DNA from: Anaeramoeba ignava BMAN
Taxonomy: Eukaryota; Protista; Anaeramoebae
NCBI GenBank assembly: GCA_028826165.1
Contig: JAPDFW010000024.1
Location: 9,605-73,604, forward strand
DNA length: 64,000 nucleotides
Reading direction: 5' to 3'
This document shows positions 13,512 through 59,127 of the stretch, in pieces (position 1 is the stretch's first letter; each line of letters begins with the position of its first letter). The translations under genes and the position numbers were made by a program. Below the pieces are notes generated by a model, which saw only the letters and a program-made list of their open reading frames with translations, had not been told where the DNA came from and searched no databases.

Positions 13512-13565
<54 letters not shown>

Positions 13566-13995: not shown

Positions 13996-14011
13996 AAAAA
14001 AAAAAAAATAA

Positions 14012-25321: not shown

Positions 25322-26881
25322 ATATGATCCTTTCTTATATTTATATTTATATTTATATATTTTATTTCAAGTAAATTTAATATCTAAATCCAAAAATTAC
25401 TTTATTAACTAATTTATTATTTGTAAGTTTATTTTAATTTCCAAAAATAAATTAATTAATTAATTAATTAATTAATTAATTAATTTTATTCTATTTATAA
25501 TTAATATTTATTCTATTTTATTTTTATATTTATATTTATATTAGATAAAATGTTTATTTTATTTTATTTTATTTTATTTTATTTTATTCATCTCCATTTC
25601 CAAAATAAAAATAATTCCAAAAAAAATCTAAATTTATATTTATTAATATCTATCATTATTTATAATTATAATTTATCAAAATTAATTAATGGAATTTCTT
25701 TTTTCAATTAAATTAAATTAGATTAGATTAGATTAGATTTATCTATTATTCTAAATTATTTATCATTTTAAATTATTTTATTTATTTATTTTTATTTATA
25801 AATAATAAATACATTTTGATTTTGATTTTGGAAAATATCATTAATTGATTAATAAATAATAAAATAAAATAAATCAATAATTTATTTCTAATTCATTTTT
25901 TGTTTTTGTTTTTGTTTTTGTTTTTGTTTTTTAATAATTTTTATTTTTAAATTTCCAAATTCATTTTTCATTTTTCATTTTTCATTTTTTTTTCTTTTCA
26001 AAGAATATTTATAAATATAAATATAAATATAAAAATTACCTTTAGAAAATGAAAGGAAATACCAAACACTAAAAAAATATTCAAATTCAAATTAATTTTT
26101 AATTATAATTAATTATTTTGTAATAAAATTAATTAAGAAATGATTTAAAAAAGAATTTATTATTAATACTAAATTAATATTATTAAATATAAAGAAATAA
26201 ATTTAAAACAAAAATTAGATAAAAATTTAATTTAATTTTTAATAATAATTAATTTATTATTTTGCAATAAAATTAATTAAGAAATGATTTTAAAAAAGGA
26301 TTTATTATTAATATTAAATAAATATTATTAAAAATAAAGAAATAAATTTAAAACAAAAATTAGATAAAAATTTAATTTAATTTTTAATTATAATTAATTT
26401 ATTATTTTGCAATAAAATTAATTAAGAAATAATTTTAAAAAGAATTTATTATTAATATTAAATTATTATTATTAAAAATAAAGAAATAAATTTAATTAAA
26501 ATATTTTATTTATTATTTTACTTAATTTTTAATAATAATTTATTTAATATTTTGCAATAAAATTAATTAAGAAATGATTTTAAAACTTTTATTCATTTTT
26601 TTTCATTTTTTTTTTGTTTTTTTTTTCTAAATTAAAAAATTAAAAAGAAAAAAAAAGAAAAAATCAAATAAAAATTTTAAAAACAAAATTATAAAAAAAA
26701 ATAAAGAAAAAATGTTAATTAAAATGTAAAATAATTTATTTATACAATTTATAAAAAGGATTTATTATCTAAATTAATTCAAAATTGATTTAAAAACAAA
26801 TATAAATTTAAATCAAAAAAAAATTAAATTTAATTAATTTTATTTCAAAAAAAATAAAATAATATTAAATAAATTTAAATA

Positions 26882-26907
26882 CAGTCATTTTTATTTGGGT
26901 GCGGACA
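26882..26907 (+). repeat. Left terminal inverted repeat (26 bp)
   Basis: Exact reverse complement of 52915-52940; preceded by TA (26880-26881). Confidence 0.95.
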
Positions 26908-27146
26908 CCTTCCTTAAGGGACACTGGAAGACCTTCATGAAAAATTTTTAAAAAATTTTTAAAAAATTTTTAAAAAATCTTTAAAAATTTTTTAATGTTT
27001 CACGTGTTGAAATTCATCACTTCTATTTTCTATTCTGAATTTAATTCCCTGCATATAGTAGTTTATTTTCATTCTCATTTTGCATATTTTTTTCCCTTTT
27101 ATCATTTTCCTTTTTTCATCTTTCTTCAATTTTAAATGGAAAATAA

Positions 27147-30140
27147 ATAATAATTGATTTAATAAATATAAATAAATGTTTATTAAATACACTTCTTAAT
27201 CAATATCATTATATATTATTTATTGATTATTGATTTAATTTATTTTATTTATTGAAAATTATAAAATCATCCATTCATTTTGAAAAATTTAAAAGGGAAA
27301 AAATTGAAATAAAATTATATTAATATTTAAATAATAATTGATTTAATAAATATAAATAAATATTTATTAAATACACTTCTTAATCAATATCATTATATAT
27401 TATTTATTGATTATTGATTTCATTTATTTTATTTATTGAAAATTATAAAATCATCCATTCATTTTGAAAAATTTAAAAGGAAAAAATTGAAATAAAATTA
27501 TATTAATATTTAAATAATAAATGATTTAATAAATATAAATAAATGTTTATAAAATACACTTTTTAATCAATATCATTATATATTATTTATTGATTATTGA
27601 TTTATTTTATTTTATTTATTGAAAATTATAAAATCATCCATTCATTTTGAAAAATTTAAAAGGAAAAATTGAAATAAAATTACATTAATATTTAAATAAT
27701 AATTGATTTAATAAATATAAATAAATGCTTATAAAATACATTTTTAATCAATATCATTATATATTATTTATTGATTATTGATTTAATTTATTTTATTTAT
27801 TGAAAATTATAAAATCATCCATTCATTTTGAAAAATTTAAAAGGAAAAAATTGAAATAAAATTACATTAATATTTAAATAATAATTGATTTAATAAATAT
27901 AAATAAATATTTATAAAATACACTTCTTAATCAATATCATTATATATTATTTATTGATTATTGATTTCATTTATTTTATTTATTGAAAATTATAAAATCA
28001 TCCATTCATTTTGAAAAATTTAAAAGGAAAAAATTGAAATAAAATTACATTAATATTTAAATAATAATTGATTTAATAAATATAAATAAATATTTATTAA
28101 ATACACTTTTTAATCAATATCATTATATATTATTTATTGATTATTGATTTAATTTATTTTATTTATTGAAAATTATAAAATCATCCATTCATTTTGAAAA
28201 ATTTAAAAGGAAAAATTGAAATAAAATTATATTAATATTTAAATAATAATTGATTTAATAAATATAAATAAATGTTTATTAAATACACTTCTTAATCAAT
28301 ATCATTATATATTATTTATTGATTATTGATTTAATTTATTTTATTTATTGAAAATTATAAAATCATCCATTCATTTTGAAAAATTTAAAAGGAAAAATTG
28401 AAATAAAATTACATTAATATTTAAATAATAATTGATTTAATAAATATAAATAAATATTTATTAAATACACTTTTTAATCAATATCATTATATATTATTTA
28501 TTGATTATTGATTTAATTTATTTTATTTATTGAAAATTATAAAATCATCCATTCATTTTGAAAAATTTAAAAGGAAAAATTGAAATAAAATTATATTAAT
28601 ATTTAAATAATAATTGATTTAATAAATATAAATAAATATTTATTAAATACACTTCTTAATCAATATCATTATATATTATTTATTGATTATTGATTTATTT
28701 TATTTTATTTATTGAAAATTATAAAATCATCCATTCATTTTGAAAAATTTAAAAGGAAAAAATTGAAATAAAATTATATTAATATTTAAATAATAATTGA
28801 TTTAATAAATATAAATAAATGTTTATTAAATACACTTCTTAATCAATATCATTATATATTATTTATTGATTATTGATTTAATTTATTTTATTTATTGAAA
28901 ATTATAAAATCATCCATTCATTTTGAAAAATTTAAAAGGAAAAATTGTAATAAAATTATATTAATATTTAAATAATAATTGATTTAATAAATATAAATAA
29001 ATGTTTATAAAATACATTTTTAATCAATATCATTATATATTATTTATTGATTATTGATTTAATTTATTTTATTTATTGAAAATTATAAAATCATCCATTC
29101 ATTTTGAAAAATTTAAAAGGAAAAATTGAAATAAAATTATATTAATATTTAAATAATAATTGATTTAATAAATATAAATAAATATTTATTAAATACACTT
29201 CTTAATCAATATCATTATATATTATTTATTGATTATTGATTTAATTTATTTTATTTATTAAAAATTATAAAATCATCCATTCATTTTGAAAAATTTAAAA
29301 GGAAAAATTGAAATAAAATTACATTAATATTTAAATAATAATTGATTTAATAAATATAAATAAATGTTTATAAAATACACTTCTTAATCAATATCATTAT
29401 ATATTATTTATTGATTATTGATTTAATTTATTTTATTTATTGAAAATTATAAAATCATCCATTCATTTTGAAAAATTTAAAAGGAAAAATTGAAATAAAA
29501 TTATATTAATATTTAAATAATAATTGATTTAATAAATATAAATAAATATTTATAAAATACACTTCTTAATCAATATCATTATATATTATTTATTGATTAT
29601 TGATTTAATTTATTTTATTTATTGAAAATTATAAAATCATCCATTCATTTTGAAAAATTTAAAAGGAAAAATTGTAATAAAATTATATTAATATTTAAAT
29701 AATAATTGATTTAATAAATATAAATAAATGTTTATTAAATACACTTTTTAATCAATATCATTATATATTATTTATTGATTATTGATTTAATTTATTTTAT
29801 TTATTGAAAATTATAAAATCATCCATTCATTTTGAAAAATTTAAAAGGAAAAAATTGAAATAAAATTATATTAATATTTAAATAATAATTGATTTAATAA
29901 ATATAAATAAATATTTATAAAATACACTTCTTAATCAATATCATTATATATTATTTATTGATTATTGATTTAATTTATTTTATTTATTGAAAATTATAAA
30001 ATCATCCATTCATTTCGAAAAATTTAAAAGGAAAAAATTGAAATAAAATTATATTAATATTTAAATAATAAATGATTTAATAAATATAAATAAATGTTTA
30101 TAAAATACACTTCTTAATCAATATCATTATATATTATTTA
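27147..30140. repeat. ~182-bp satellite, ~16 near-identical copies, inside the giant element
   Basis: Marker AAATCATCCATTCATTTTGAAAAATTTAAAAGG recurs every 182-183 bp. Confidence 0.95.
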
Positions 30141-30895
30141 TTGATTTCATTAAGTGTATTTGCTTCATAACTCAATTTTTTTTCTTGTTTCTGAATACAG
30201 TAAATATTTTTCCAAAAGTTGATTTCCTGGAAACGCTCTATTAATATCTATATTATTCATTCCTATCAAATTGTGATTTGGAAAATTTTTTTGTTTTGTT
30301 TTTAATAAATTCTACTAGAAAGCAAAAATTTTTTTGTTTTTTCATTTTTGTGGATTTTTTTTTAATTCAAAATTCTAACAGAAAATAATCTATTTTTAGT
30401 TAAATATGTAATTGGTTTATCTGTCTAAATTTGTTTTTAGAGTAAAATTAAAGAAAAATTTCCCCTTTTTAATTCATTTCAATGGAAGGCAAAATTTTTT
30501 TTTTTCATTTTTTTTTTCATTTTTTTTTCATTTTTTATTTTTCATTTTTTTCTTTACTTTTTTTTTTCACTTAGTGAATTATTCTGATCAACTTTTTTGC
30601 AAATTTTATATTCAGCCTTTCCGATCTTGAAAGTATTTTTTCCAATTTATATTTGAATTTAACTTGATTTTGATTTTTTTTTGGATTTTTTGTTTTGAAT
30701 TTTTTTTTAATAACTATGAGGCCTCTTTTGCACAAAAATCACAGAACTGTTGTTGTTTTAGTTGCTCGTTCTTCTCGTAATTTTTTCATGAATTGGATCA
30801 ATTCACAAAACACAAAATAAAATATAACAATGTACAAATGAAACAAATTCTGAAAATTACTCAATTTATTTAACACTTAATATTTATATAATTTA

Positions 30896-33800
30896 ATGAC
30901 TTGAAGATTTATGGATTTTTTCACCGTATATTACAAGTATTTTTGGTTTGGTTATATGCTCATTTATAAGTTGTTTTATTTAGATAATATATATATTGAT
31001 TTATATGTTCGTTTATATGTTCATTTATATACTCGTTTATAAATTTATTTATTGGTTAGATTCTCGTTTCTATATTTATTGATATACTTATTTATATGTT
31101 CGTTTATCAATTTATTTATATTGTGGTTTATATGTTAGTTTATATATATAGGTTTTTTTTTTTGACTTTTGATTTTAAATATTGATTATAAATTTAATTA
31201 ACAATTTAATTAATAATTTAATTAATAATTTAATTAACAATTTAATTAATAATTTAATTAACAATTTAATCAATAATTTAATTAATAATTTAATTAATAA
31301 TTTAATTAATAATTTAATCAACAATTTAATTAATAATTTAATTAATAATTTAATTAATAATTTAATCAACAATTTAATTAATAATTTAATTAACAACTTG
31401 ATTAATAATTTAATCAACAATTTAATTAATAATTTAATTAATAATTTAATTAACAATTTAATAAACAATTTAATTAACAATTTAATTAATAATTTAATTA
31501 ATAATTTAATCAACAATTTAATTAATAATTTAATTAACAATTTAATTAATAATTTAATCAACAATTTAATCAATAATTTAATCAACAATTTAATTAATAA
31601 TTTAATTAATAATTTAATTAATAATTTAATTAATAATTTAATTAATAATTTAATTAACAATTTAATTAATAATTTAATTAATAATTTAATTAATAATTTA
31701 ATCAATAATTTAATTAACAATTTAATTTTAAATTTAATTAACAATTTAATAAACAATTTAATTAACAATTTAATTAATAATTTAATTAATAATTTAATTA
31801 ACAATTTAATTAATAATTTAATTAACAATTTAATTAATAATTTAATCAACAATTTAATTAATAATTTAATCAATAATTTAATTAATAATTTAATTAACAA
31901 TTTAATTAACAATTTAATTAACAATTTAATTAACAATTTAATTAACAATTTAATTAATAATTTAATTACTCAATTTAATTAATAATTTAACTAACAATTT
32001 AATTAACAATTTAATAAACAATTTAATCAATAATTTAACTAATAATTTAATTAATAATTTAATTAATAATTTAATTAACAATTTAATTAATAATTTAATT
32101 AATAATTTAATTAATAATTTAATTAACAATTTAATTAATAATTTAATTAACAATTTAATTAATAATTTAATTAATAATTTAATTAACAATTTAATTAATA
32201 ATTTAATCAATAATTTAATTAATAATTTAATTAACAATTTAATGACCTGAAGATTTATGGATTTTTTCACCGTATATTACAAGTATTTTTGGTTTGGTTA
32301 TATGCTCATTTATAAGTTGTTTTATTTAGATAATATATATATTGATTTATATGTTCGTTTATCTGTTCATTTATATACTCGTTTATAAATTTATTTATTG
32401 GTTAGATGCTTGTTTCTATATATATTGATATATTTATTTATATGTTCGTTTATCAATTTATTTATATGTTAGTTTATATTCCAGTTTATATATATATAGT
32501 TTTTTTTTTGACTTTTGATTTTAAATATTGATTATAAATTTAATTAACAATTTAATTAATAATTTAATTAATAATTTAATTAATAATTTAATTAATAATT
32601 TAATTAATAATTTAATTAATAATTTAATTAATAATTTAATTAATAATTTAATTAACAATTTAATTAACAATTTAATTAATAATTTAATTAATAATTTAAT
32701 CAATAATTTAATTAATAATTTAATTAATAATTTAATTAATAATTTAATTAATAATTTAATCAATAATTTAATCAACAATTTAATTAACAATTTAATTAAT
32801 AATTTAATTAATAATTTAATTAATAATTTAATTAATAATTTAATTAACAATTTAATTAACAATTTAATCAACAATTTAATTAATAATTTAATCAATAATT
32901 TAATTAATAATTTAATTAATAATTTAATAATTTAATTAATAATTTAATTAATAATTTAATTAATAATTTAATTAATAATTTAATTAACAATTTAATTAAT
33001 AATTTAATTAACAATTTAATTAATAATTTAATTTTAACTTAATTAATAATTTAATTAATAATTTAATTAATAATTTAATTAATAATTTAATTAATAATTT
33101 AATTAATAATTTTTTAATTAATAATTTAATAATTTAATTAATAATTTTAATTAATAATTTAATTATTAAATTTAATCAATAATTTTAATTAATAATTTAA
33201 TTAATAATTTAATTTTAATTAATTTAATTAATAATTTAATTAATAATTTAATTAATAATTTAATTAATAATTTAATTAACAAATTTTAATTAAACAATTT
33301 AATTAATAATTTAATTAACAATTTAATTAATAATTTTAATAATAATTTAATTAACAATTTAATTAATAATTTAATTAATAATTTAATCAATAATTTAATT
33401 AATAATTTATTAATAATTTAATTAACAATTTTAATTAACAATTTAATCAACAATTTTAATAATTTAAATTAATAATCAATAATTAATTTAATTAATAATT
33501 TAATCAATAATTTAATTAATAATTTAATTAATAATTTAATTAACAATTTTAATTTAATTAATAATTTAATTAATAATTTAATTAATAATTTAATTAATAA
33601 TTTAATTAATAATTTAATTAATAATTTAATTAATAATTTAATTAATAATTTTAATTAATAATTTAATTAACAATTTAATTAATAATTTAATTAACAATTT
33701 AATTAATAATTTAATTAATAATTTAATTAATAATTTAATTAATAATTTAATTAACAATTTAATTAATAATTTAATTAATAATTTAATTAATAATTTAATT

Positions 33801-36800
33801 AATAATTTAATTAATAATTTAATTAATAATTTAATTAATAATTTAATTAATAATTTAATTAATAATTTAATTAATAATTTAATCAATAATTTAATCAATA
33901 ATTTAATCAATAATTTAATGACCTGAAGATTTATGGATTTTTTCATCGTATATTACAAGTATTTTTGGTTTGGTTATATGCTCATTTATAAGTTGTTTTA
34001 TTTAGATAATATATATATTGATTTATATGTTCGTTTATATGTTCATTTATATACTCGTTTATAAATTTATTTATTGGTTAGATTCTCGTTTCTATATTTA
34101 TTGATATACTTATTTATATGTTCGTTTATCAATTTATTTATATGTTAGTTTATATTCCAGTTTATATATATAGTTTTTTTTTTTTGACTTTTGATTTTAA
34201 ATATTGATTAATAATTTAATCAATAACTTAATTAATAATTTAATTAACAATTTAATTAACAATTTAATTAATAATTTAATTAACAATTTAATCAATAATT
34301 TAATTAATAATTTAATTAATAATTTAATCAACAATTTAATCAATAATTTAATCAACAATTTAATCAACAATTTAATCAATAATTTTTAATTAACAATTTA
34401 ATTAACAATTTAATTAATAATTTAATTAATAATTTAATTAATAATTTAATTAATAATTTAATTAATAATTTAATTAATAATTTAATCAATAATTTAATTA
34501 ACAATTTAATTAACAATTTAATTAATAATTTAATTAATAATTTAATTAATAATTTAATTAATAATTTAATTAATAATTTAATTAATAATTTAATTAATAA
34601 TTTAATTAATAATTTAATTAATAATTTAATTTAATTAATAATTTAATTAATAATTTAATTAATAATTTAATTAATAATTTAATTAATAATTTAATTAATA
34701 ATTTAATTAATAATTTAATTAATAATTTAATTAATAATTTAATTAATAATTTAATTAATAATTTAATTAATAATTTAATTAATAATTTAATTAATAATTT
34801 AATGACCTGAAGATTTATGGATTTTTTCACCGTATATTACAAGTATTTTTGGTTTGGTTATATGCTCATTTATAAGTTGTTTTATTTAGATAATATATAT
34901 ATTGATTTATATGTTCGTTTATATGTTCATTTATATACTCGTTTATAAATTTATTTATTGGTTAGATTCTCGTTTCTATATTTATTGATATGGTTATTTA
35001 TATGTTCGTTTATATATATTGATTAGATGCTCGTTTCTATATTTATTGATATGGTTATTTATATTGTGGTTTATATGTTAGTTTATATATAATTTTTTTG
35101 AATTTTGAAATATTTTAGTTGAAATATTAATTAACAATTTAATTAACAATTTAATTAACAATTTAATTAACAATTTAATTAATAATTTAATCAACAATTT
35201 AATTAACAATTTAATTAATAATTTAATTAATAATTTAATTAATAATTTAATTAATAATTTAATCAACAATTTAATTAATAATTTAATTAACAATTTAATT
35301 AACAATTTAATCAATAATTTAATTAATAATTTAATTAATAATTTAATTAATAATTTAATTAATAATTTAATTAACAATTTAATCAATAATTTAATAATTA
35401 ATAATTTAATCAATATTTAATCAATAATTTAATTAATAATTTAATTAATAATTTTAATCAATAAATTTAATTAACAATTTAATTAATAATTTAATCAATA
35501 ATTTAATTAACAATTTAATTAACAATTTAATCAACAATTTAATTAACAATTTAATTAATAATTTAATCAACAATTTTAATCAATAATTTAATTAATAATT
35601 TAATTAATAATTTAATTAACAATTTAATTAATAATTTAATCAACAATTTAATTAATAATTTAATCAACAATTTTTTAATTTAATCAATAATTTAATTAAC
35701 AATTTAATTAACAACAAATTAATAATTTTAATCAAATTTAATTAATAATTTAATCAACAATTTAATTTAATTAACAATTTAACAAATAATCAATTTTAAT
35801 CAATAATTTAATTAACAATTTAATTAATAATTTAATTAACAATTTAATTAACAATTTAATTAATAATTTAATTAACAATTTAATCAATAATTTAATTAAT
35901 AATTTAATTAACAATTTAATTAATAATTTAATCAACAATTTAATTAATAATTTAATCAACAATTTAATTAATAATTTAATCAATAATTTAATTAATAATT
36001 TAATTAACAATTTAATTAATAATTTAATCAACAATTTAATTAACAATTTAATCAATAATTTAATTAACAATTTAATTAATAATTTAATCAATAATTTAAT
36101 TTAATTTAATTTAATTAATAATTTAATTAACAATTTAATTAACAATTTAATAAACAATTTAATTAATAATTTAATTACTCAATTTAATTAACAATTTAAT
36201 TAATAATTTAATCAATAATTTAATTAACAACTTAATTAACAATTTAATCAACAATTTAATTAACAATTTAATCAATAATTTAATTAATAATTTAATTAAT
36301 AATTTAATTAATAATTTAATTAACAATTTAATTAATAATTTAATTAATAATTTAATTAATAATTTAATCAATAATTTAATTAATAATTTAATTAATAATT
36401 TAATTAACAATTTAATTAATAATTTAATCAATAATTTAATTAACAATTTAATGACCTGAAGATTTATGGATTTTTTCACCGTATATTACAAGTATTTTTG
36501 GTTTGGTTATATGCTCATTTATAAGTTGTTTTATTTAGATAATATATATATTGATTTATATGTTCGTTTATCTGTTCATTTATATACTCGTTTATAAATT
36601 TATTTATTGGTTAGATGTTCGTTTCTATATTTATTGATATGCTTATTTATATGTTCGTTTATCAATTTATTTATATGTTAGTTTATATTCCAGTTTATAT
36701 ATATAGTTTTTTTTTGACTTTTGATTTTAAATATTGATTAATAATTTAATCAATAACTTAATTAATAATTTAATTAATAATTTAATTAACAATTTAATTA

Positions 36801-41618: not shown

Positions 41619-43145
41619 CTAATTAGAATCGTCAGAACGTTTTGTGGAATCAATAATTCCTGAAGAATCACTATTAGATGATAAAGAGGAATCAGAATAA
41701 TGTTCATCATTTGCTTTTTCTGGTGAATTATAACTATTAGACTCGGATGAGTTCTCCTCCAAAAATAAATTTGAATTTGAATTTTGCTTTGAATTTCGAG
41801 ATTTTTTCTTAAATTTGTTTTTTTTTGAATTTTTTTGTCTTAAAGCTCCTTTTTTTCTTTTTATTCTTTTTTGACTTGAATTTGAATTTGATTTTGAATT
41901 TGATTTTGAATTTGATTTTGAATTTGATTTTGAATTTGGTTTTGAATTTGGTTTTGAATTTGGTTTTGAATTTGGTTTTGAATTTGGTTTTGAATTTGAT
42001 TTTGAATTTGATTTTGAATTTGGTTTTGAATTTGATTTTGATTTTGAATTTGAATTTGAATTTGATTTTGAATTTGATTTTGAATTTGGTTTTGAATTTG
42101 ATTTTGATTTTGATTTTCGTTTCATATTTTGTTCATTTTGAAGATTCAATAACCGTTGAGAAAGCAACGGTTTATTGCTCATCTCTTCCTTTTGTAAATT
42201 TATTAATCTTTTATGAATTTCTTTTTTGTTTTTACTTTTAGAAAAAATCTTATTTTTTTTTTTGAATTTTTTTGTTGTATTCTTCAATCGCTTTTGATTC
42301 GATATTCTTGTTCTAGTAGCATTCCACTTATCAATTTCTCCTTTAATTGTTTCTTCAAGATTTTTTTTATTTGAATGCTTCATGCACATACTATATGCGT
42401 ATTTCCTTTTTTCTGCTGATTGTACATTCCTTACACAACTTTTGTAAATATGATAAGTCGAATTTGCCTTCATTTCGAGTATCGGAACACAGTTTTTTGC
42501 ATGATTTTTTTCTTGGGCCCCACCACAAAGGCTACAAATCCTTTTTGTTGTTTGTTGTTGTGGTTGATTTTGTGTTGTTTTATTTTTTGTTGTTTGTTTT
42601 TTTTTTTTTGGTTTTTTTTTTTTTTGTTTTTTTTTTCTTGCATTTTGATCAATAGATTCATTATCAGATTTTGAATTTGAATTTGAATTTGAATTTGAAT
42701 TTGATTTTGATTTTGATTTTGATTTTGAATTTGAATTTGAATTTGAATTTGAATTTGAATTTGAATTTGAATTTGGTTTTGAATTTGATTTTGAATTTGA
42801 ATTTGAATTTGATTTTGATTTTGATTTTGATTTTGAATTTGAATTTGATTTTGATTTTGAATTTGAATTTGATTTTGAATTTGATTTTGATTTTGATTTT
42901 GAATTTGAATTTGATTTTGATTTTGAATTTGATTTTGATTTTGAATTTGATTTTGATTTTGAATTTGATTTTGAAATTGAAATTGAATTTGGAATTGAAT
43001 TTGGAATTGAATTTGAAAAATCACTTTGCTCTGTGTTCATGTTGAGTTTATTCTTTGTTGAAGAAATGTGGGGGGATTTTTCTTGATCTTTGGGAAATGA
43101 AAAAAGAAAAAAAAATAATTTTATTAAACACTTGTTTTGGGGCAT
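41619..43145 (-). CDS. Basic, S/N/K-rich low-complexity protein with a CxxC-H-C zinc-knuckle-like motif (transposon cargo)
   Basis: 508-aa ORF with a non-repetitive core containing CSLCGGAQEKNHAKNC, and K-rich NLS-like runs. The true start may be MNTEQ at 43040. Confidence 0.7.
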   Translation of the reverse strand: MPQNKCLIKLFFFLFSFPKDQEKSPHISSTKNKLNMNTEQSDFSNSIPNSIPNSISISKSNSKSKSNSKSKSNSKSKSNSNSKSKSKSNSKSNSNSKSKSNSNSKSKSKSKSNSNSNSKSNSKPNSNSNSNSNSNSNSNSKSKSKSKSNSNSNSNSNSKSDNESIDQNARKKKQKKKKPKKKKQTTKNKTTQNQPQQQTTKRICSLCGGAQEKNHAKNCVPILEMKANSTYHIYKSCVRNVQSAEKRKYAYSMCMKHSNKKNLEETIKGEIDKWNATRTRISNQKRLKNTTKKFKKKNKIFSKSKNKKEIHKRLINLQKEEMSNKPLLSQRLLNLQNEQNMKRKSKSKSNSKPNSKSNSKSNSNSNSKSKSNSKPNSKSNSKSNSKPNSKPNSKPNSKPNSKPNSKSNSKSNSKSNSKSNSNSSQKRIKRKKGALRQKNSKKNKFKKKSRNSKQNSNSNLFLEENSSESNSYNSPEKANDEHYSDSSLSSNSDSSGIIDSTKRSDDSN

Positions 43146-43196
43146 TCCCCTTTGGCGATTATTTATTTTTAATTTTGGTTTTTAAAAATTCAATTA

Positions 43197-44435
43197 TTAT
43201 TTTCCAATTTTGGATTTAATTTCAATATCTTAAATTTTATTATTAATCAAAAAGTAATTTTATTGAAAAAAAAATGTTACATTCTTGAAAACTATTCAAT
43301 TCATATGGATAAGGCGAATTCTCGAATTCATCTCCACTATATACCGAATCAAAACTATCTGAAGAATCGAAAACTACAACTTCCTCTTGAATTTGATTGA
43401 AGTTTTCATGTTTAATTTGTAACGGAATTAAACATTCAATAAGATTTGAATTTTCACTTTCACTTTGATATTCAATTTGATTTTGATTTTGATTATTTTC
43501 ATTTTCACTTTGATATTCAATTTCATTTTCACTTTTATATTCAATTTCATTTTCACTTTGATATTCATTTTCATTTTTATTTTCATTTTGATTTTGATTA
43601 TTTTCATTTTCAGTTTGATATTCAGTTTGATTTTGATTTTGAATTTGAATTTGATTTTGATTTTCATTTTGATTTTGATTTTGATTTTGATATTCAATTT
43701 CAATTTGATTTTGAATTTGAATTTGAATTTGATTTTGATTTTGATTGTCAATTTCAATTCGGTTTTCATTTTCATTTTGATATTCAATTTCAATTTGATT
43801 TTCATTTTGATTTTGATTTTCAATTTCAATTTGATTTTCAATTTCAATTTCATTTTCATTTTCATTTTCAATTTCAATTTCATTTTCATTTTCATTTTCA
43901 ATTTCAATTTCAATTTCATTTTCATTTTCAATTTCAATTTGATTTTGATTTTGATCATTTCCATTTTCAATTTCAATTTGATTTTGATTTTGATCATTTC
44001 CATTTTCATTTCCATTTTCATTTTCTTTTTGTTTTTTTTCACTCCTATTGGCTACAAGAAAAAATTTTAGATTTTTTGAGAAATAAAAAAGTAAGATTTT
44101 TTTTAATTATATTTATTAGATAAAAATATACAGATTTTGTTTATATCATAAAGTATATTATTGATATTCAAATTAGGGAAGGATTGAGAAATTTTTTTAA
44201 GCAGATTTTTGTGTATGAACTTTCCAAGGGAAGAAATTGCCCAAGAGTAGACATGCGGTGAAATATATTCTTTTTTGGTCATTTCTTTAAGAATTTCTAA
44301 AATTTCTCCAATATTTTCTATTTTGATATTTGGTGAGACAATTTTTGAAGAAATCAAAAATAACGAACAGATTTCTTCACTTTTTTCCAATTGATTTAAA
44401 TGCTGTAATATTTCTTCAATTTTTTTATTTTCCAT
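43197..44435 (-). CDS. Acidic E/N/Q/I-repeat hypothetical protein, 3 predicted exons (44435-44132, 44051-43281, 43228-43197)
   Basis: The 110-aa ORF joins in phase 1 across a GT..AG intron (44131-44052) to an ATG-less open frame reading SNRSEKKQKENENGNENGNDQNQ...QEEVVVFDSSDSFDSVYSGDEFENSPYPYEL. A second GT..AG intron (43280-43229) leads to a stop. Confidence 0.6.
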
Positions 44436-44499
44436 TTTTTAAAAAGAAAAGAAAGAAGAGAAAAATTTAGAAAAAATCCAAAAAAAATAAAAAAGAAAA

Positions 44500-44810
44500 A
44501 TAAAAATCCAAAAATATTTTTATTATAAATTTTAATTTAAAATTGAATAAGTGATCCAAATAAAAAAGAAAAACAAAAAATCCAAAAATATTTTTATTTT
44601 AAATTTTAATTTAAAATTGAATAAGTGATCCAAATAAAAAAGAAAAACAAAAAATCCAAAAAAATTTTTATTTTAAATTTTAATTTAAAATTGAATAAGT
44701 GATCCAAATAAAATAAAAAAGAAAAAAAATAAAAATCCAAAAAAATTGTTATTTTAAATTTTAATTTAAAATTGAATTTAAAATTGAATAAGTGATCCAA
44801 ATAAAAGAAA
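44500..44810. repeat. Four direct repeats with core AAATTGAATAAGTGATCCAAATAAAA (~74-93-bp spacing)
   Basis: GTGATCCAAA at ~44551, 44625, 44699 and 44792, between the transposase stop and the next gene start. Confidence 0.85.
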
Positions 44811-44851
44811 ATTAAAAAGAGAAAATGAAAAATAAATTAAAATGAATCATT

Positions 44852-46042
44852 TTAATCTGTTCTGGAATCATTTTGATCCAAATCTGCTAAATATGGGTAA
44901 TCTTCCTTAAAAAAATTGAATGCATATTGCTTCTCATTGAATTGATCAAATAATAGAGACCAAGTTTCCAAAGGCTGATCAATAAAATCTTGTGTATAAT
45001 TCTTCAAATTTCGTTTGATCACGCCGAAAGCCATTTCTATTGGATTCAATTCTGGCGAATATGGAGGTAAATAAAAAAACAAAACCCCTTTTTCACTTAA
45101 TAAAAATCGAAGATCGTTATCAATTCCGTGATGAACAGCACAGTTATCTAGGATTAGAACCATATTTGAACGAAGAACAGGTACTAATGAATTTTCAATA
45201 AAATGTAAAAAACAAAGTGAATTAACGGATCTCTGAAAATGATCAACAACAAGAAATCCTTGAGAGCAAAAAGCACATATCGAATTGATTCGATGCTTTT
45301 TATCTCTTGATAGAAAACTACCAAATATATTAGAGCCTTTTTGTGACCATGCATCTGTTCTAGATGCTTTATTTAAATTGACTCCCGTCTCATCTAGAAA
45401 AATTACAGAATCAGCTCCATAAGTAATAAAGATATTATGCATAAGATCAATAAAAGCAAGTTTCAACATCTGATTTTCTTGAGTGAACTTTCTAGGGCTC
45501 CTAAGAGACATCTTCTTTTTAGAGAATCCAAGTTCTGAAGAGATGAATTTATGAAGGGTCGAAATTGAAACGTCAATTTGATATGTGTGGATTAATTTAT
45601 CTTTGATCTCTCTTAAAAAAATTGTAGGAGTCAACTTTAGCTCCTTTTTGATGATTTTTCCTTCATGCTGTGAGATTTTTTTAATTGATGTTTTTTTTTT
45701 CTTATTTTTTTGATCTATCAATATTGTCGTTTCAATCACAGAATTATAAAAAATGACACATAAATGATGTTCATCATTAATTTCGTCAGATCCTTTTGTT
45801 AATCTAATCAATGTTTGTATTAAATAATTCTTTAGTTTACAGATATATGTTTTTCCTTTTTTAAACTCCTTTGCCATTGCTCTAACTGAAGGAATATCGT
45901 CACCTAAAAGCAAGTATATTAAAATATATTCTGCCAACTCAAATAATATGTCAATAACAATAAGAGGATCATATGCCCTTCCTTTGAAAAAACGTCCTTT
46001 GTTTTGATTGGTTTTGAAATTATCAAAATTTAAATTGCTCAT
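44852..46042 (-). CDS. IS630/Tc1-family DDE transposase (DD36E), intact, 396 aa
   Basis: N-terminal GRAY motif and HTH (SVRAMAKEFKKGKTYI); second HTH (IFLREIKDKL..VSISTLHKFISSELGFSKKK); catalytic VIFLDETG, LILDNCAVHH and LPPYSPELNPIE. Hand count gives 36 residues between the second D and the E. Confidence 0.95.
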   Translation of the reverse strand: MSNLNFDNFKTNQNKGRFFKGRAYDPLIVIDILFELAEYILIYLLLGDDIPSVRAMAKEFKKGKTYICKLKNYLIQTLIRLTKGSDEINDEHHLCVIFYNSVIETTILIDQKNKKKKTSIKKISQHEGKIIKKELKLTPTIFLREIKDKLIHTYQIDVSISTLHKFISSELGFSKKKMSLRSPRKFTQENQMLKLAFIDLMHNIFITYGADSVIFLDETGVNLNKASRTDAWSQKGSNIFGSFLSRDKKHRINSICAFCSQGFLVVDHFQRSVNSLCFLHFIENSLVPVLRSNMVLILDNCAVHHGIDNDLRFLLSEKGVLFFYLPPYSPELNPIEMAFGVIKRNLKNYTQDFIDQPLETWSLLFDQFNEKQYAFNFFKEDYPYLADLDQNDSRTD

Positions 46043-46329
46043 CTTATAAAAAAATCAAAAAATGAAAAAAAAAGATTAAAAAGAAATAAAAAAATGAAAA
46101 AAAAAATGAAAAAAAAAAAATTAAAAAAAATGAAAAAAAAAATTATTTTTTTCATTATAGTGTATATTAATGTATATATATCTTATAAAATGAGGATAAA
46201 AGAAAAATGTTGAATAGAATTTCGAAAATTATATTTAATTTGGTTTGATTTGATTTATTTGAAAAAAAAAGGTCAATTTAAAATTGAGATTTTCTTATAT
46301 TTTTTTTTAAATAGAAACCAAATAAATTC

Positions 46330-47610
46330 AGGAATTAACATCTCTCAAATTATCAATTTTGATTTCATTGATAACAATTTTGGAGATTGTGTTTTGTGAG
46401 AAGAAGAAAAAAAAAGAGAAAGTAAATTTATCTTTGTTTTGTTTTGTTTTGTTTTGTTGTTTTTTATTGAAACGGATTTTCTCATGAAAATCCTCCAGCA
46501 TGATTCTGGTTTGTAATATCAAAAGAAAAGAAAAGAAAAGAAAAGAAAAGAAAAGAAAAAAGAGAAAAAAAAAAAATGAACGAAATCTATCTTTGATTTC
46601 AAAATTTTTTCAATAATTGTGAATTTGATTCCGTTTATCAAGGTTATTCCTTGTGAAATTTTTTTTTCTGAATTAATTTTTTGGATTTTTCATTCCATTT
46701 TTTGATTTGTTTTTCTGATCTTTTTATTTATCATTCTGTTTCTGATTATTTTGGTGGGAGTTTTCATATTGTTGTTTGTAAATTGTTCTTCTAATTCTTT
46801 ATTTTATGGAGTTGGTTTTGTTCTACAAATCTTCAGTTTTCTTCATCTCTAAGAATGTTATTATCTGCTTATGTAAATAATAATATCATTTCAAACATAT
46901 TATGGATTAATTCTTTTTTTTTTTAGGATATATTTTTCTTCTAACTATTACTTTTATTAGTTGTTTTTCATACTTGAATCGAATAAATAGCTTTTCTGAT
47001 TTCATTTCTGGGATGGTTATATGTTGAAAATTTATCAAGAAAAAGAACGATTTCTTCTCTTTGGTTCTAAAAATTGAAAGTATCTTGGATTTTGTTGTTT
47101 CAAATATTTTTTCTGTTTTATTTGTATTTCCCTGATTTCAAATCAGATATTCTTTATTCATTATAATTTTTTGTTAGCTTTCCTAAACAAAATAAATTTT
47201 TAAAACCATTTCAAATCATGCTTTTTATCATATTTGATGAATTCGTTCTATTTCATTTGTTCCTATTATCATAATTCTTGGATCTAAAAATCCTTCTGAG
47301 TTTTTTTTTTTTGAATGGTTTAGTTTCTTTGTTTTAGAGAATGAGTTTTTGCATGATTTATTTGGAATGATTGGAGAAACTTTTAGATTTCTGATGAACA
47401 ACTTTTCCTTCGTATCAGAACTGATTTATCTGCTTGACTTTTTTTTTATCTTCATATTTGAAATTCCGCATTTAGTGTATAGGAGTTTTCCATTAGATAT
47501 TATCATAATATTTGTTATTATGTGTCTCGTTATTTATTTTCTTATCTTTTAGTTATCTTTGATAAGATTGAAAACACTATTTTAGATGATGATATTTTCT
47601 GGAGTTTCCT
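46330..47610 (-). pseudogene. Possible decayed gene remnant inside the element
   Basis: Non-repetitive sequence with coding-like composition, but only short interrupted frames and no recognisable motif. Confidence 0.25.
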
Positions 47611-47612
47611 GT

Positions 47613-47831
<219 letters not shown>

Positions 47832-48196
47832 ATTTAGAAGAAAAAGAAATTATTTTATTTTTTTTTCCTTCTTTTTGGAAGTCATTTCAAAAATGATCAA
47901 ATGGGGTAATCCTCAGGTATATGCAGATTCCCTATTTATTGCCTAAATCAGATAATTTCGATTTTGAAACCTTTTGAAATAATCACAGGATATTAGAGAG
48001 AAGGGAATCATTTTTCACAAGAATATTTTCAAGACAAAAAACCAAATGAAACAGTGAAAGAAAAAAAAAGAAGAATTACTTATAGAGGAACCAAAGTTGC
48101 TGTCTCCTTAAGAAAAAAGAAAAAGAAATCAAAAATCAAATGAAATGATTTCAAGTTTGTTGATTTTTCCAATTATTCAAAAAAAAAATTGAATCT

Positions 48197-51140
48197 TTAA
48201 TAATTTCTGTGATAAAAAAGAAATTGAATATCTTCTGAAAATTTAAATGGATTTTGCAAAATAGGTTGATATCCATCATTAAACTCCCACCAAGTTCTAT
48301 CCATTTCTCTTTTACAAAAAGAAAAAAAATGAGCAAAATCTTCCTTTTTTTGATGAAAAATAATTCCAAATAAAGAATAAGTTGGATTTTCAAGAGGATC
48401 TTGTAAAAATGAAGATAAATCAAGAAATTCATTAGGAATAATTGCAAGAGAGTTTTTGAAGTTTACTTTTTTGATTGGATCATATTCTAACCTTTTGAAA
48501 TAAATAACAAGAATTTCTGGAATTTTGGAAATTTTAAAAGAATGAAATGATGCATTTTGTTCATCGCATTTAGAACAAATCCAAGCATTTTCTCCTATCA
48601 TCAAAGATGGTGTAAAATAAATCTCAAGAAGTTGATTTGAAGATATATTCTTTTGTTTAATCAAAGCAATATCTAAACATTGAAATTCATTTCTGAAATT
48701 GATTTGTTCTCCACAATCATCACAAGTAATAGTTATGAAAAATTCTCCTTGAAACATATTACAAATTGACATATTTTGATTCCCCTTTTCTAATTCTTCT
48801 TGTGTAAGATCTGGATCTTCAAGAAAATCTTTTGTTTCTTGTTGAATCATTTCAATTAAACTCATTAATAATTCCATTTCATCTTGAGGTCTAAAATTAT
48901 TCCATTTTTCATTTTTTTTCTGCTAAAGCATCATGAAGAAAACGTAAATCGAAATGATTGTTTGAAGTTTTGAGCATTGTTTCTAAAATAATTGTAATAA
49001 ATCCAATTCCATTTAATTGTGAAAAATTAGTTCTTATCAAACATTGAAGAATTGAAGCAAGATAACAACTATTTCCAATATTAGGAATTACTCGAAAATT
49101 CTAAAAAAAAAGGTTTGAAATATTAAATATGAAATATTAAATATTAAATATTGGATTGAATCCATTTCAAAAATCAAAAAAAATCAAGATTTTTACTTTA
49201 TCAAAAAATGTTCTATCATAGCTTAGAATTTCTTTAGGAAATTTGATAGATTTGCCAATTTCAATTTTCTTTTCCTTTTTTTCTACTTCAATCAAATTTA
49301 GTTTTTGTTTTTGTTTTAATTTGGAAAGTTGATTCTGATTTAGAAAATTGAGAGGTTGAGATATTGATTTGAGATTTAAGAGTTTTTGATTTGAATTGTT
49401 TTTGATTTTGTTTTTTTTATTCATTTCTCCTTGTTGTTTTGATTGTGAAATATCTATGTTTTTTCTTTTTTTTTGAGAATTTGTTTGAGATCTTGTTGAA
49501 TTTTTCTCATTTGGAATATTCTCGTTATTAGGAATAACTTTTTTTGTTCTTAATAATTTGGGGAATTTAATTCTTTTGTTTGTATCATCCAAAAAATCAT
49601 GTAAAATAATTGAATTATCAGTGAAAATGAAATGATGTTGGTTGTGAAGAAGTGGAATTTTTGGAACATTTTGAATTACTTGAGATTTATCAACTTCAAT
49701 AATTATTGGATAAGTTCTTTGTAGTTTTTGAAGAAAAAAGAAAAGATCTAAAATGGAACAGATTTGAGAAACTGATACTTTTTGTCTTGAAATATTCCCA
49801 AAATGGGAATCAGCTAAATTTCTTCCATGATATGATTCAAAATAAACAAGTTCAATTTCTTGAAATAAAGAATGAAATAAATCATAAATTATAATAGGAA
49901 CTTGATTATTTTTGAGGTGTCTTCCTCCATCACTAAAAAAAACAACTCTTCTTCTTTGAGTAAATTCTTTTGTTTCAAATTGATATTCAAGAAAATTTTT
50001 CAAATAACGCAAAGCAGATATAACATAATATTGATCCTAATTAAAATAAATTAAATTTTATTGTTTTGTGTTTTTTTTTTGAAAATAGATAACATTTTAT
50101 TGTTATTTTTGTTGATTAAAAAACAATCAAAAAACCTTATGTGAATCTTCTGAGATAAAATCAATATAAGATAATGAATCACCACTTAGAGTAGAATTAA
50201 ATAACCTCCATGATTTCCTTTTATACCATTGTTCTGTTGTCCAATAATCTTGCTTTTGTTGTATATTCATAGCAAAATCTAAAACAATAATCAAAGTATC
50301 AGGATCATTTTTACAACTTTGAAAATAATTTCTAATATTCTTGATATATTGAAGATGATTAATTGGAATAGGATTTTGAGCACATATTCCACATTCAAAA
50401 AATCTTGATTTTCCACATTTTAAAAGAAAAAATTTATTAGAAATGAAGCAGAATTGTTCATAAGATATTCTTGTTGGTTCTTCTTTTTCATTTTCATTTT
50501 CATTTTCATTTTCATTTTCATTTTCATTTGCTTTGGTTAAAGGAGTTCTAAAATTCATGTGAGTTTGACTTGAAAAAAAATCTAAACAACAAGTATCTTC
50601 TAAAAGATTATTAATTATTTCAATTTTGATTAAAAAATCTTCTCCTATTTGTTCCATTACTAAATCTCGATGTGTTTTTATCTTTTTAGAACTATTCAAA
50701 TGATGAAATTTTGAGTTCAAATGTCTTTCCACTTTTTTTTTTGAAGATGGATGAAATTGAAGATCACATATTTTACATAAAACTTCATTTGATTCATCTT
50801 TTCTATCTAAACAAGGGCATGTTTCAATAAATTCTTTCAAACTTTCTTGAGGTTGTTTTTTCTTTGTAAAAGAAGAAATTCCTTCCAAATGTAAAACAGG
50901 TCTTTCATTTTCTTTTTCAATTTGAGAATTTTCTAAAGAAACTAATCCTTTAAAAATTTGAAATCCATCTTCATTTAAAATGAGAATTTTTTGATTGTTT
51001 TCAAAATAGAAAATTTTTGAAATTTGGATTGATTGATCAAAATAAGAACTTATTTTTGATTTGAGATTTTCTAAATTTGGATAAGAAGATAAATTTAAAA
51101 GATTTGATTGATTTTCAAAAATAATTTTGCAAATTTCCAT
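48197..51140 (-). CDS. Zn-finger + Sola-like DDD transposase + USP (peptidase C19) deubiquitinase fusion, ~915 aa, 3 exons (51140-50136, 50036-49197, 49100-48197); one +1 frameshift in an A8 run at ~48912-48919
   Basis: Phase-0 GT..AG introns 50135-50037 and 49196-49101 join the ORFs in frame. Motifs: CKIC..VERHLNSKFH zinc finger; LDFAMN, FFSDGGRHLKN and YFESYHGRNLADSHFG (D-D-D); USP Cys box IPNIGNSCYLASILQCL, PQDEMELL, and His box YSLFGIIFHQKKEDFAHF..WWEFND. Confidence 0.82.
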
Positions 51141-51699
51141 CAAAATAAAAAAAACAATTTCAAAAGAAAAAAAAAAGAAAAGAAGTAAGAAAAATGAAAG
51201 GAATTTTTTTTCAAATTTCTTTTTTAAATGGGAATTCTCATTATCTCAAAAATGTGAAGAAAAAATGAGAATAATCTTTTTTTTTCCAATAAGTTGTCAT
51301 TTATGATCCTTATTTGTTTTAATTAAATTTTTAATTGTTTTGTTTTTGAAATTCTTTTTGATCTTTTTAATAAAATTGAATTAAGAAAACAATTCAAAGA
51401 AAGAATAAGAAATTCTCTTTAAAAAACAAAGAAATAAATTAGTTCATCAAAAATAAAAAAATTGATTCAAATCTTAAAATAAGAATTTAATTTAATTTAA
51501 TTTAGAAATATTTTCTACAATAAATGAATTCAAAATGGAAATTTAAATAAAATTATTTGTCTAAAATTGAATTTTTCTATTTACAATCAAGAAAGAAAAA
51601 CAAATCAAAAAACAATAAAAAAAAATATTAAAAAAAAAATTTGAACTTGAGGACGAAGAGGATTTTGGGGATTTTTTGTTTGTTCATTTTCTCGCGTCG

Positions 51700-52520: not shown

Positions 52521-52914
52521 AAGAATGAATTATTAATTAAATAGATTTAATTTAATATAAATAAAAGAAACAGTATTCAAAGATATATTCTTAATTGTGT
52601 ATATTCAGAAGTCAATATGAGCTTGAGAATAAAAAAAAAATTCCTTAAGGATTTGACTGGGAAAAATCACTTGTGGGTTTGATCAATAATTAAAAGGAAG
52701 AGACAATGAAAAAAATTCAGAACTCTGAGTCTAGAAGTTTTTGATATCTAATATGTCTTAATTATTATTAAAAAAAAAGAAAGAAAAAGACCAATTAAAT
52801 TGGGTTGATTTTCGGACATTTCAAAAAAATAAAAAAAAAATGAAATAAAAATGAAAAAAAAATGAAAATTTTTTAAAAATTTTTTAAAAAATTTTTAAAA
52901 AATTTTTAAAAAAA

Positions 52915-52940
52915 TGTCCGCACCCAAATAAAAATGACTG
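52915..52940 (-). repeat. Right terminal inverted repeat (26 bp)
   Basis: Exact reverse complement of 26882-26907; followed by TA (52941-52942). Confidence 0.95.
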
Positions 52941-54180
52941 TAATAATATTTAATTAAATTTAAAGTATAAATTATTTTGAAATAAATTAATGATATAAAA
53001 TATAATTTTATTATTTATTTTCCTTATTAAATAATTAATAAAATAATTTAAACATTTTTAATATAAATTTAATCAAAAAATTAAATAATAAAAATCAAAA
53101 TTAAAATATAAAATAATTTATTTATATAATTTATAAAAAGAATTTATTATCTAAATTAATTCAAAATAGATTTTAAAATAAATATAAATTTAAATCAAAA
53201 AAAAATTAAATTTAATTAATTTTATTTCAAAAAAAATAAAATAATTTTAAATAATATTAAATAATAATATTTAATTAAATTTAAAGTATAAATTATTTTA
53301 AAATAAATTAATAATATAAAATATAATTTTATTATTTATTTTACTTATTAAATAATTAATAAAATAATTTAATCATTTTCAATATAAATTTAATCAAAAA
53401 TAAATAATTAAAATCAAAATCAAAAATATAAAATAATTTATTTATATAATTTATAAAAAGATTTTATTATCTAAATTAATTCAAAATTGATTTAAAAATA
53501 AATATAAATTTAAATCAAAAAAAATTAAATTTAATTAATTTTATTTCAAAAAAATTAAATTTAATTAATTTTATTTCAAAAAAAATAAAATAATTTTTAA
53601 ATAATATTAAATAATAATATTTAATTAAATTTAAAGTATAAATTATTTTGAAATAAATTAATAATATAAAATATAATTTTATTATTTATTTTCCTTATTA
53701 AATAATTAATAAAATAATTTAATCATTTTTAATATAAATTTAATCAAAAAATTAAATAATAAAAATCAAAATTAAAATGTAAAATAATTTATTTATATAA
53801 TTTATAAAAAGATTTTATTATCTAAATTAATTCAAAATAGATTTAAAAATAAATATAAATTTAAATCAAAAAAAATTAAATTTAATTAATTTAATTTCCA
53901 AAAAAAATAAAATAATTTTAAATAATATTAAATAATAATATTTAATTAAATTTAAAGTATAAATTATTTTGAAATAAATTAATAATATAAAATATAATTT
54001 TATTACTTATTTTCCTTATTAAATGATTAATAAAATAATTTAATCATTTTTAATATAAATTTAATCAAAAAATTAAATAATAAAAATTAAAATTAAAATG
54101 TAAAATAATTTATTTATATAATTTATAAAAAGATTTTATTATCTAAATTAATTTAAAAATGATTTAAAAATAAATATAAA
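52941..54180. repeat. ~321-bp host tandem repeat (~3.8 copies), the target of the giant element
   Basis: TAATAATATTTAATTAAATTTAAAGTATAA at 52941, ~53262, ~53612 and ~53933. The preceding part of the first unit lies at ~26720-26881. Confidence 0.9.
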
Positions 54181-59115: not shown

Positions 59116-59127
59116 AAAAAGGGAAAA

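Follow-up and report, generated by a model that had tools for sequence, protein, structure and literature searches.

The IS630/Tc1/mariner superfamily provides the textbook minimal transposon—one gene in 1-3 kb of DNA. Tc1, Tc3, Sleeping Beauty and bacterial IS630 share a DDE_3 core, a D,D,E triad, TA target-site duplication and short terminal inverted repeats (TIRs) that begin CAGT (as in Tc1 and Tc3), and all of these features recur in the element described here. Larger relatives include the ciliate elements TBE1, Tec1/2 and Paramecium Sardine, which are multi-gene, high-copy germline Tc1/mariner relatives of ~4-7 kb; tandem arrays between or within the ends are found in foldback-type and similar transposons, which belong to other superfamilies. 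The DD36E 'Incomer' family, described from animals, consists of ordinary small Tc1/mariner elements (PMC6875036). The first report of a composite IS630 transposon that carries passenger genes dates, by its authors' account, from 2024: Tn630-NC1 of Nitrosomonas, 6.46 kb long and flanked by two complete IS630 copies (PMC11544213).

Here we describe an insertion of 26,059 bp in the nuclear genome of Anaeramoeba ignava, bounded at positions 26882-52940 of the window (the whole 64,000-nucleotide stretch of DNA that was analysed). The insertion is an unusually large, multi-gene, new variant of this known superfamily. We address its ends and transposase, its remaining content, its sister loci and the explanations for its size, and its relation to known systems.

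Ends, target site and transposase

The left TIR (26882-26907, + strand; the 3' end relative to the transposase gene) and the right TIR (52915-52940, - strand; the 5' end) are 26 bp long, read CAGTCATTTTTATTTGGGTGCGGACA from the initial CAGT, and are complementary at 26 of 26 positions; such a match appeared in none of 100 shuffles of the sequence, with 0 expected by chance. In the whole 42.8-Mb assembly the TIR occurs only twice, at these two ends, and no third copy lies in the window with up to 3 mismatches allowed. A TA stands directly outside each TIR (26880-26881 and 52941-52942). When the left flank, one TA and the right flank are joined, they align at ~95% over 318 bp, gap-free at the junction, to a satellite unit at ~53774-54092 of the same 321-350-bp satellite; this unit is a paralogous empty site with a single TA. 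A sequence-only reading of the window had proposed perfect TIRs 26 kb apart with TA outside both and exact boundaries, and these proposals held: a genuine TA-duplicating IS630/Tc1-type element with exact ends is confirmed.

The 26-kb element is a single copy, and the case for its own mobility draws on one empty-site paralogue as opposed to a true empty allele. Just inside the ends, phased A/T tracts with an ~11-bp period (AAAAATTTTT-like) can be read directly at 26940-26990 on the left and 52862-52914 on the right; similar subterminal tracts lie inside the ends of the related elements on C36, C51 and C40.

The transposase gene (44852-46042, - strand) has a reading frame uninterrupted over 396 codons. 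Its 396-aa product matches Pfam DDE_3 (PF13358) with E = 2.7e-27 and scores 109.1 bits with the NCBIfam IS630 model NF033545, above its cut-off of 100. The triad D217/D299/E336 is invariant in the alignment, 36 residues separate its second D from the E, and the family profile matches the catalytic domain of Sleeping Beauty (5cr4, 7.8e-10) and Mos1 (3hos, 7e-7). Relative to bacterial relatives the protein has ~60 extra N-terminal residues; for the paired-like helix-turn-helix DNA-binding domain that the superfamily has at this end, profile matches are weak only, to the Sleeping Beauty PAI subdomain and to Pax paired domains (E = 0.03-0.6). The DNA around the frame has a GC content of ~10-25%. 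An intact DD36E transposase of IS630/Tc1 type between the TIRs, as had been called from sequence alone, is confirmed. Four features of the superfamily—a DDE_3/IS630-type RNase-H-fold transposase, DD(about 34-37)E spacing, TA duplication and TIRs—are present, while the usual anatomy of a short, one-gene element is not: a conserved core of three genes and other content fill the 26,059 bp.

Core genes, satellites and a second transposon-like gene

The transposase is followed directly downstream by ORFX (44103-44435, - strand), a small helical ORF of 110 aa with weak but reciprocal similarity to the ORFs that occupy this position on C51 and C36 (phmmer 3e-6 to 1e-4, in a small local set). Between ORFX and the next gene, ORF2, is a low-complexity, E/N/Q-rich reading frame with no family match (43246-44106, - strand). 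ORF2 (41619-43145, - strand; 508 aa) contains K/N/S-rich low-complexity runs and, at 42282-42566, a zinc-knuckle-like domain of ~80-95 aa with the pattern C-x-L-C, H, C ... W that recurs on C40/C146, C51 and C36 in the ORF that follows the transposase. The predicted fold of this domain has a pLDDT of 87; it has no Pfam or PDB match. Neither accessory ORF has detectable relatives outside the family. In all lineages the gene order is transposase, ORFX-type small helical ORF, then the ORF with the zinc-knuckle-like domain; the family's own content is this three-gene core of ~4.5-5 kb.

Tandem repeats make up ~13 kb, or half, of the 26,059 bp, with ~3 kb taken by a USP-type gene, ~4.4 kb by the core, and the rest by AT-rich spacer. 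The ~13 kb of internal satellite noted earlier is borne out (27144-30146 plus about 30860-41031), with lengths that come from a Nanopore-based assembly and may be inexact. The arrays occupy the 3' half of the element. A 182-bp satellite (27144-30146) comprises 16.5 units that are 97% alike; copies at 96% identity or more occur only inside this element, the next best being on C101 at 78-82%. The second array (30860-41031) is modular and spans 10 kb: nine conserved cassettes (~290-340 bp, 87-98% alike) and two divergent intervals (55-66% identical to the conserved cassettes, 89% to each other) are separated by tracts of a 12-mer (AATTTAATTAAT) of varying length. The 12-mer satellite is found genome-wide—also on C51, C77, C87, C88, C93, C107 and C24. 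Additionally, an (AATA)55 microsatellite lies between the two transposase-type genes (47613-47832), and an (AATA)72 run lies inside the C51 element.

The second of these genes (48197-51140, - strand) is transposon-like but unrelated to the first; it has a zinc-finger and DDE-like (DUF7869-like) N-terminal part fused to a USP/UCH deubiquitinase. Exon 1 (51140-50136) is followed by an intron (50135-50037), exon 2 (50036-49197), a second intron (49196-49101) and exon 3, from 49100, with a frame change at an A8 run (48912-48919); the paralogue on C40 is annotated as a single 973-aa protein. DUF7869 was the protein-atlas lead for the N-terminal part (protein-language-model features, 0.91) and gave a weak match in one paralogue. 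It is a member of a separate family, represented by ~12-15 syntenic copies across the genome, and its copy on C40 is located outside the IS630-type left ends that were identified there. From this distribution it is probably nested in the 26-kb element, inside which no termini, target duplication or TIR pair of a USP-bearing unit were found. Pfam scans of the element's long ORFs returned DDE_3 and UCH only; membership of another kind of giant mobile element (Maverick/Polinton, Starship, Helitron-type gene capture) was considered and rejected, as their hallmark genes (protein-primed polymerase plus integrase, tyrosine recombinase, Rep/helicase) are absent from these scans. The transposase, ORFX, ORF2 and the USP-containing gene are all on the - strand, in keeping with the at least four co-oriented genes first proposed. 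The label of cargo, however, was overstated: satellite accounts for about half of the element, and the USP gene, multicopy and transposon-like, is probably nested; no host gene is carried.

Sister loci and the origin of the large size

The A. ignava genome contains five such transposase loci and one fragment, with paralogues on C36, C51 and C40/C146; they form four lineages that differ at 38-45% transposase identity. All four lineages have open transposase frames and are old; the family has so far been seen only in A. ignava. With one or two copies in each lineage, the recent activity that identical TIRs and an intact transposase had suggested is not supported, and no decayed swarm of copies was found in the genome. 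Two further TIR-bounded elements, of 20,182 bp (C36) and 14,667 bp (C51), have related CAGT termini, with TA at three of their four ends (the left flank on C51 is AA); for neither was an empty-site paralogue found. These TIR pairs enclose the same core gene order. The proposed family of giant cargo elements is supported as to large sisters with a conserved multi-gene core, but not as to cargo. The C40-type left end is present at two places with unrelated flanks, where homology begins exactly at the TA-CAGT junction and extends at 94% over 2.06 kb, of which ~1 kb is a 145-bp satellite; the ends are therefore discrete, and some satellite travels with the element. No full copies share one interior: non-core interiors differ between lineages, and between the 5' end and the transposase lie as little as 1.1 kb (C51) and as much as ~7 kb, via different inserts. 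The 26-kb insertion sits in almost pure satellite surroundings, within the 321-350-bp satellite; an rRNA gene unit lies 12.9 kb upstream of it. For two of the loci an rRNA unit stands upstream at a distance of a few kb to 13 kb; their orientation relative to it is the same, as is the surrounding landscape of 173-bp satellite.

The best explanation, and one that we hold with good confidence, is a single genuine cut-and-paste insertion of IS630/Tc1/mariner type, comprising the three-gene core, satellites and a probably nested USP gene. The 26-bp CAGT ends would be bound by the DD36E transposase, which would cut the segment out and place it at a TA, with duplication of that TA; the element would have entered the 321-350-bp satellite near the rRNA unit, and a USP-bearing transposon would be nested within it. 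Since the assembly is Nanopore-based and the contig, at 73.6 kb, is short and rich in repeats, chimeric joining could in principle have brought together TIRs from different molecules or from two small elements. Such an artefact is very improbable: put together, the outer flanks make up a single uninterrupted satellite unit with one TA, an outcome that a misjoin would not yield; there is no third TIR anywhere in the genome, and the gene order agrees with that of the sister elements. DNA runs from the same sample, which are not independent evidence, contain 0.58-0.93 of the words of 44852-51245. It is also unlikely, if less so, that the lineages are no longer selfish and are retained as parts of an rDNA-adjacent satellite domain, with a role in heterochromatin or at chromosome ends, for example. 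Retention would account for the intactness of genes that are old, diverged and single-copy, and it accords with five loci and a fragment in place of a decayed swarm, with open frames in four lineages at 38-45% identity, and with the two similarly placed loci near rRNA units; lineage-specific intact TIRs and the TA duplication, however, point to mobility, two loci out of five are few, and the assembly may miss heterochromatic copies.

If the insertion is genuine, its size at the time of insertion may be explained in two ways. We give close to an even chance to a core of ~5-7 kb that inserted and then grew in place, by satellite expansion or recombination and a later jump of the USP transposon; the present size would then be uninformative on the capacity of the transposase. 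The near-pure satellite surroundings, the independent occurrence elsewhere of both the 12-mer satellite and the USP gene, the highly homogeneous arrays (which fit recent local amplification) and the unshared non-core interiors all favor growth in place, but TIRs that are still 26/26 and a 396-codon frame open in DNA of such low GC argue against a long residence, and the C40-type copies carried at least 1 kb of satellite. Alternatively, the whole ~26-kb unit may have moved, as one of a family built for large cargo with satellites and the USP gene as passengers—a reading that we regard as tenable but doubtful. In its favor, all three TIR-bounded elements are large (14.7, 20.2 and 26.1 kb), the two C40-type left ends share internal satellite from the same point at different sites, the TIRs are perfect and the transposase intact, and the 182-bp satellite variant is private to this element; against it, no interior is common to any two full copies, the 5' distances vary, the 12-mer satellite is genome-wide and the USP gene forms a multicopy unit of its own. 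On our estimate, the chance that the element measured at least 15 kb at the time of its insertion is somewhat below even. A broader proposal is more speculative and, on balance, improbable: an undescribed A. ignava clade would move as 15-26-kb units with its own ORFX and ORF2, carrying satellites and other transposons, and its members would be vehicles that seed and reshuffle satellite DNA in rDNA-adjacent chromosome regions, in which four ancient lineages have survived undamaged, each with one or two copies.

Significance and relation to known systems

A protist lineage with a three-gene core in every member, spanning 15-26 kb, would extend the known range of the superfamily. It would also give a natural test of the segment size that a Tc1-type transposase can move, which matters for Sleeping Beauty-type vectors. 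The satellite location beside dispersed rRNA units, together with the absence of decayed copies, raises the question of how the elements persist; if the size is bloat gained after insertion, the locus amounts to no more than an interesting annotation of an undescribed family.

The nearest outside relative with DNA available is on a metagenome contig, ERZ25070185 (L055), with a transposase core that is 34% identical. Like the A. ignava element it has TA-CAG termini and a second gene inside; in contrast, it measures 2,636 bp, with 75-nt TIRs and without satellites, and the 26-kb element is far larger. The second gene of this relative, on the opposite strand, has no detectable similarity to ORFX or ORF2 by family search. 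In Incomer, too, 36 residues separate the second D from the E (PMC6875036), a likeness in spacing alone that may be coincidence. Tn630-NC1 resembles the A. ignava element as an IS630-type system that encloses additional genes; a composite of its type was rejected here, as it requires two complete flanking IS630 copies and this element has one transposase gene and two bare TIRs. The ciliate elements TBE1, Tec1/2 and Sardine likewise combine a protist transposase of IS630/Tc1/mariner type with extra element-encoded ORFs; however, their accessory genes are different and their copy number is high, whereas the accessory ORFs in A. ignava lack detectable relatives and copy number is minimal. Internal tandem arrays are shared with foldback-type elements, although in A. 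ignava they lie in an IS630/Tc1-type element and include a genome-wide 12-mer. Compared with Tc1-like and IS630 elements, the A. ignava element is set apart by its 26 kb, at least three conserved genes, kilobases of internal satellite and one copy per lineage.

Ends, insertion site and surroundings of the element

The element is bounded by two perfectly complementary 26-bp terminal inverted repeats (TIRs) starting CAGT, at 26882-26907 (+) and 52915-52940 (-), with TA directly outside both. Its right flank is a 321-350-bp satellite, and weaker homology to this satellite in the left flank reaches back to ~26245. When the flanks are rejoined through one TA (160 bp from the left, 158 bp from the right), the sequence aligns end to end with a neighbouring satellite unit (~95%), with no gap at the junction and a single TA in that unit at the insertion point—an assembly misjoin is therefore unlikely. 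The ends and this paralogous empty unit look as a precise 26,059-bp insertion with TA duplication should, and the boundaries are as exact as the sequence-only reading had claimed.

That reading had also proposed an assembly-wide search for the TIR, which returns two copies only and no nearer partner. A third copy is absent from the window at up to three mismatches (and from 100 shuffles), and none exists in the whole 42.8-Mb genome besides the two ends; this rules out two small elements with nearer partner TIRs. The inner 14-mer of the TIR has 339 genome matches at two mismatches, all of them unrelated RCC1-repeat coding sequence. The assembly itself (147 contigs) was built from Nanopore and Illumina data in the A. 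ignava genome paper, which does not mention host transposons (PMC11550330). The window is very AT-rich, with a GC content of 3-15% in non-coding sequence and 20-29% in genes; the standard genetic code yields long reading frames, which rules out a ciliate code.

A complete rRNA unit, 7762-13996 (+), lies 12.9 kb upstream of the element and comprises the SSU (7762-10027, +), 5.8S (10104-10276, +), and LSU (10359-13996, +) genes; ~13 kb of satellites fill the space between. Across the assembly, just six LSU 3' ends are present, one per contig (C26, the contig of the window, and C25, C31, C32, C41, and C146), mostly close to contig ends. The rDNA therefore looks dispersed, possibly as units at chromosome ends. 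One of these contigs, C146 (1-17133, L051-L052), carries a frameshifted IS630-type copy a few kilobases downstream of the LSU, of the type found on contig C40; it points the same way with respect to the rRNA genes as the element in the window does, and its left end is embedded in 173-bp satellite of the family occupying window 16751-21219. Near the element, just one gene seen looks like an ordinary host gene: a 396-aa open frame at 59094-60281 (+) with a BTB/POZ domain (PF00651, 6e-12). Rfam and tRNA scans ran to 53200, and later local alignments began at 53321.

Transposase, core genes and sister elements

The transposase gene (44852-46042, -) is an uninterrupted frame of 396 aa that matches Pfam DDE_3. 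It scores 109.1 bits against the NCBI curated IS630 model (cut-off 100), which three full-length paralogues likewise pass; the paralogues are listed publicly as A. ignava proteins. In our transposase alignment A1, the residues D217, D299, and E336 do not vary, and 36 residues separate the second D from the E, confirming the intact DD36E enzyme that had been noticed inside the element. A search of the PDB with the single sequence gave no match; matches were returned only by the profile of A1, to the Sleeping Beauty catalytic domain (7.8e-10), to Mos1 (7e-7), and, weakly, to paired-type DNA-binding domains. On the DDE_3 and IS630 models, the catalytic triad, and the Sleeping Beauty and Mos1 matches, membership of the IS630/Tc1/mariner superfamily is established.

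DDE_3 occurs in the A. ignava genome at only five loci and one fragment. Relative to the window transposase (C26), those on C36, C51, and C40 are 45%, 44%, and 38% identical, and the frameshifted C146 locus is a near-copy of C40 (~98%). With one or two copies per lineage, the recent activity suggested earlier is not borne out. A search for RNA runs containing the stretch found none. The fragment (C35:501433-501681, 42.5 bits) is on a large contig and adjoins matches to the 182-bp satellite family (C35:504368-505252).

The inference that the element belongs to a family of large elements holds, as two sisters are bounded by TIRs of their own. The C36 element spans 20,182 bp between ends alike at 22/26 that start CAGTC and finish GGACA, as the window TIRs do, and TA flanks both. 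The C51 element spans 14,667 bp between a perfect 26-nt pair (which extends to ~30), flanked by AA and TA. Searches for empty-site paralogues of these two elements found none. On C40, a left end reading CAGTCG preceded by TA is present at 33987 and 48650 in unrelated flanks, with homology that begins exactly at CAGT and extends 2.06 kb at 94%; a third copy is on C146, and the right end was not found in the C40 and C146 sequence examined. Since these copies share sequence from CAGT inward and their flanks are unrelated, their ends are discrete mobile-element termini. The C51 element has surroundings of its own: ~9-kb inverted repeats, 92-94% alike, lie on either side of it (C51:157-9001 and 25807-40000; L044, L046, L047), so that it forms the middle of a large palindrome-like arrangement. 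We rejected rDNA as the identity of the arms, of which the right one contains 12-mer satellite.

In the comparison of gene content among copies that had been proposed, all four lineages have the transposase followed by two further ORFs on the same strand (41619-46042 in the window); with this conserved three-gene core, the family is richer than first proposed. ORFX is a small helical ORF whose similarity among the window, C51, and C36 is weak but reciprocal (phmmer 3e-6 to 1e-4, in a small local set). ORF2 contains a conserved domain of ~80-95 residues amid low-complexity K/N/S or N/Q runs, with C, L, C, H, C, M, K, I, and W invariant; its confidently predicted fold (pLDDT 87) has a small metal-knuckle-like loop and then helices. 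Searches of Pfam families and PDB folds gave no match to the domain, and our guess would be a nucleic-acid-binding or transposase-assisting role.

Satellite filling and the putative cargo gene

Half of the element is satellite. From the left end inward, a 182-bp satellite occupies 27144-30146 (3.0 kb) in a variant that, at 96% identity or above, is private to the element. It is followed by a 10.2-kb modular array (~30860-41031), built of nine conserved cassettes (~290-340 bp, 87-98% alike) and two divergent intervals, with 12-mer tracts that vary in length (~60-800 bp) between them. What appears there as a 12-bp satellite is a higher-order array, the cassettes having 12-13-bp sub-repeats of their own; a genome search with a cassette returned AT-rich noise only. 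After the core genes come a ~2-kb spacer with an (AATA)55 run, the 2.9-kb USP gene (48197-51140, -), and a 1.8-kb stretch to the right end.

The USP gene reads as one gene with two GT-AG introns, 99 and 96 nt long, and its frame shifts at an A8 run (48912-48919). It encodes, in order, an N-terminal zinc-finger part, a DDE-like part (with DUF7869 as the protein-atlas lead), and a USP deubiquitinase with its Cys box. The trio is found again, joined and in unchanged order, at ~12-15 further genome locations with 25-35% identity (for example C40:29192-31780, C1:1082785-1085568, and C24:736857-739640), and the C40 copy lies left of both C40-type left ends and so, as far as traced, outside the IS630-type element. 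The USP gene therefore belongs to an independent repeated unit, which is most likely another transposon. Capture of the gene by the IS630-type element is possible, as the termini of the USP unit were not found inside the element, where a search for internal TIRs gave only low-complexity pairs; the best reading is nesting of one mobile element in another. The picture of a transposon laden with host genes is thus not borne out—the filling is half satellite, and the extra enzyme gene is most likely mobile itself.

Public annotation treats these fusion genes as ordinary ubiquitin hydrolases, the C40 copy being a single 973-aa "ubiquitin carboxyl-terminal hydrolase". Among 1.84 billion representative proteins, the family has almost no relatives. 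Searches used single exons rather than a joined model: for exon 1, a word search found no homologues and an exhaustive search only 8 matches, and three of the five looked up are A. ignava proteins.

Size at insertion and comparison with relatives

The transposase starts 1.1 kb from the 5' end in C51, 3.2 kb from it in the C40-type copy C40-B, and ~7 kb from it in C36 and the window; the material in between differs in each case. The 2.06 kb shared by the C40-type copies includes ~1 kb of 145-bp satellite, which indicates that some satellite, at least, moves along with that element. The element may already have been at least 15 kb long when it moved, although we lean slightly away from this reading. 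The shared internal satellite of the C40-type copies argues for it, as do the perfect ends and open frames; however, interiors are not shared, the neighbourhood is saturated with satellite, and the 12-mer is found genome-wide. This 12-mer satellite is frequent in other parts of the genome, and the C36 element has a closely similar 12-mer array at an equal relative position.

Outside A. ignava, the nearest relative with available DNA has a transposase of 34% identity. It is a 2,636-bp element with ends reading CAG preceded by TA, TIRs of 75 nt, and a second gene on the strand opposite the transposase; another outside relative has the same two-gene layout, seen twice. The metagenome contig of the 2.6-kb element (ERZ25070185, L055) also has, 0.5 kb past that element, a perfect inverted repeat of 289 nt around a 10-nt loop (5904-6491). 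Compared by spacing alone, Incomer has the same distance between the second D and the E as the window transposase. With the 2,636-bp nearest relative as the measure, the elements in A. ignava reach six to ten times the size of their closest visible kin.
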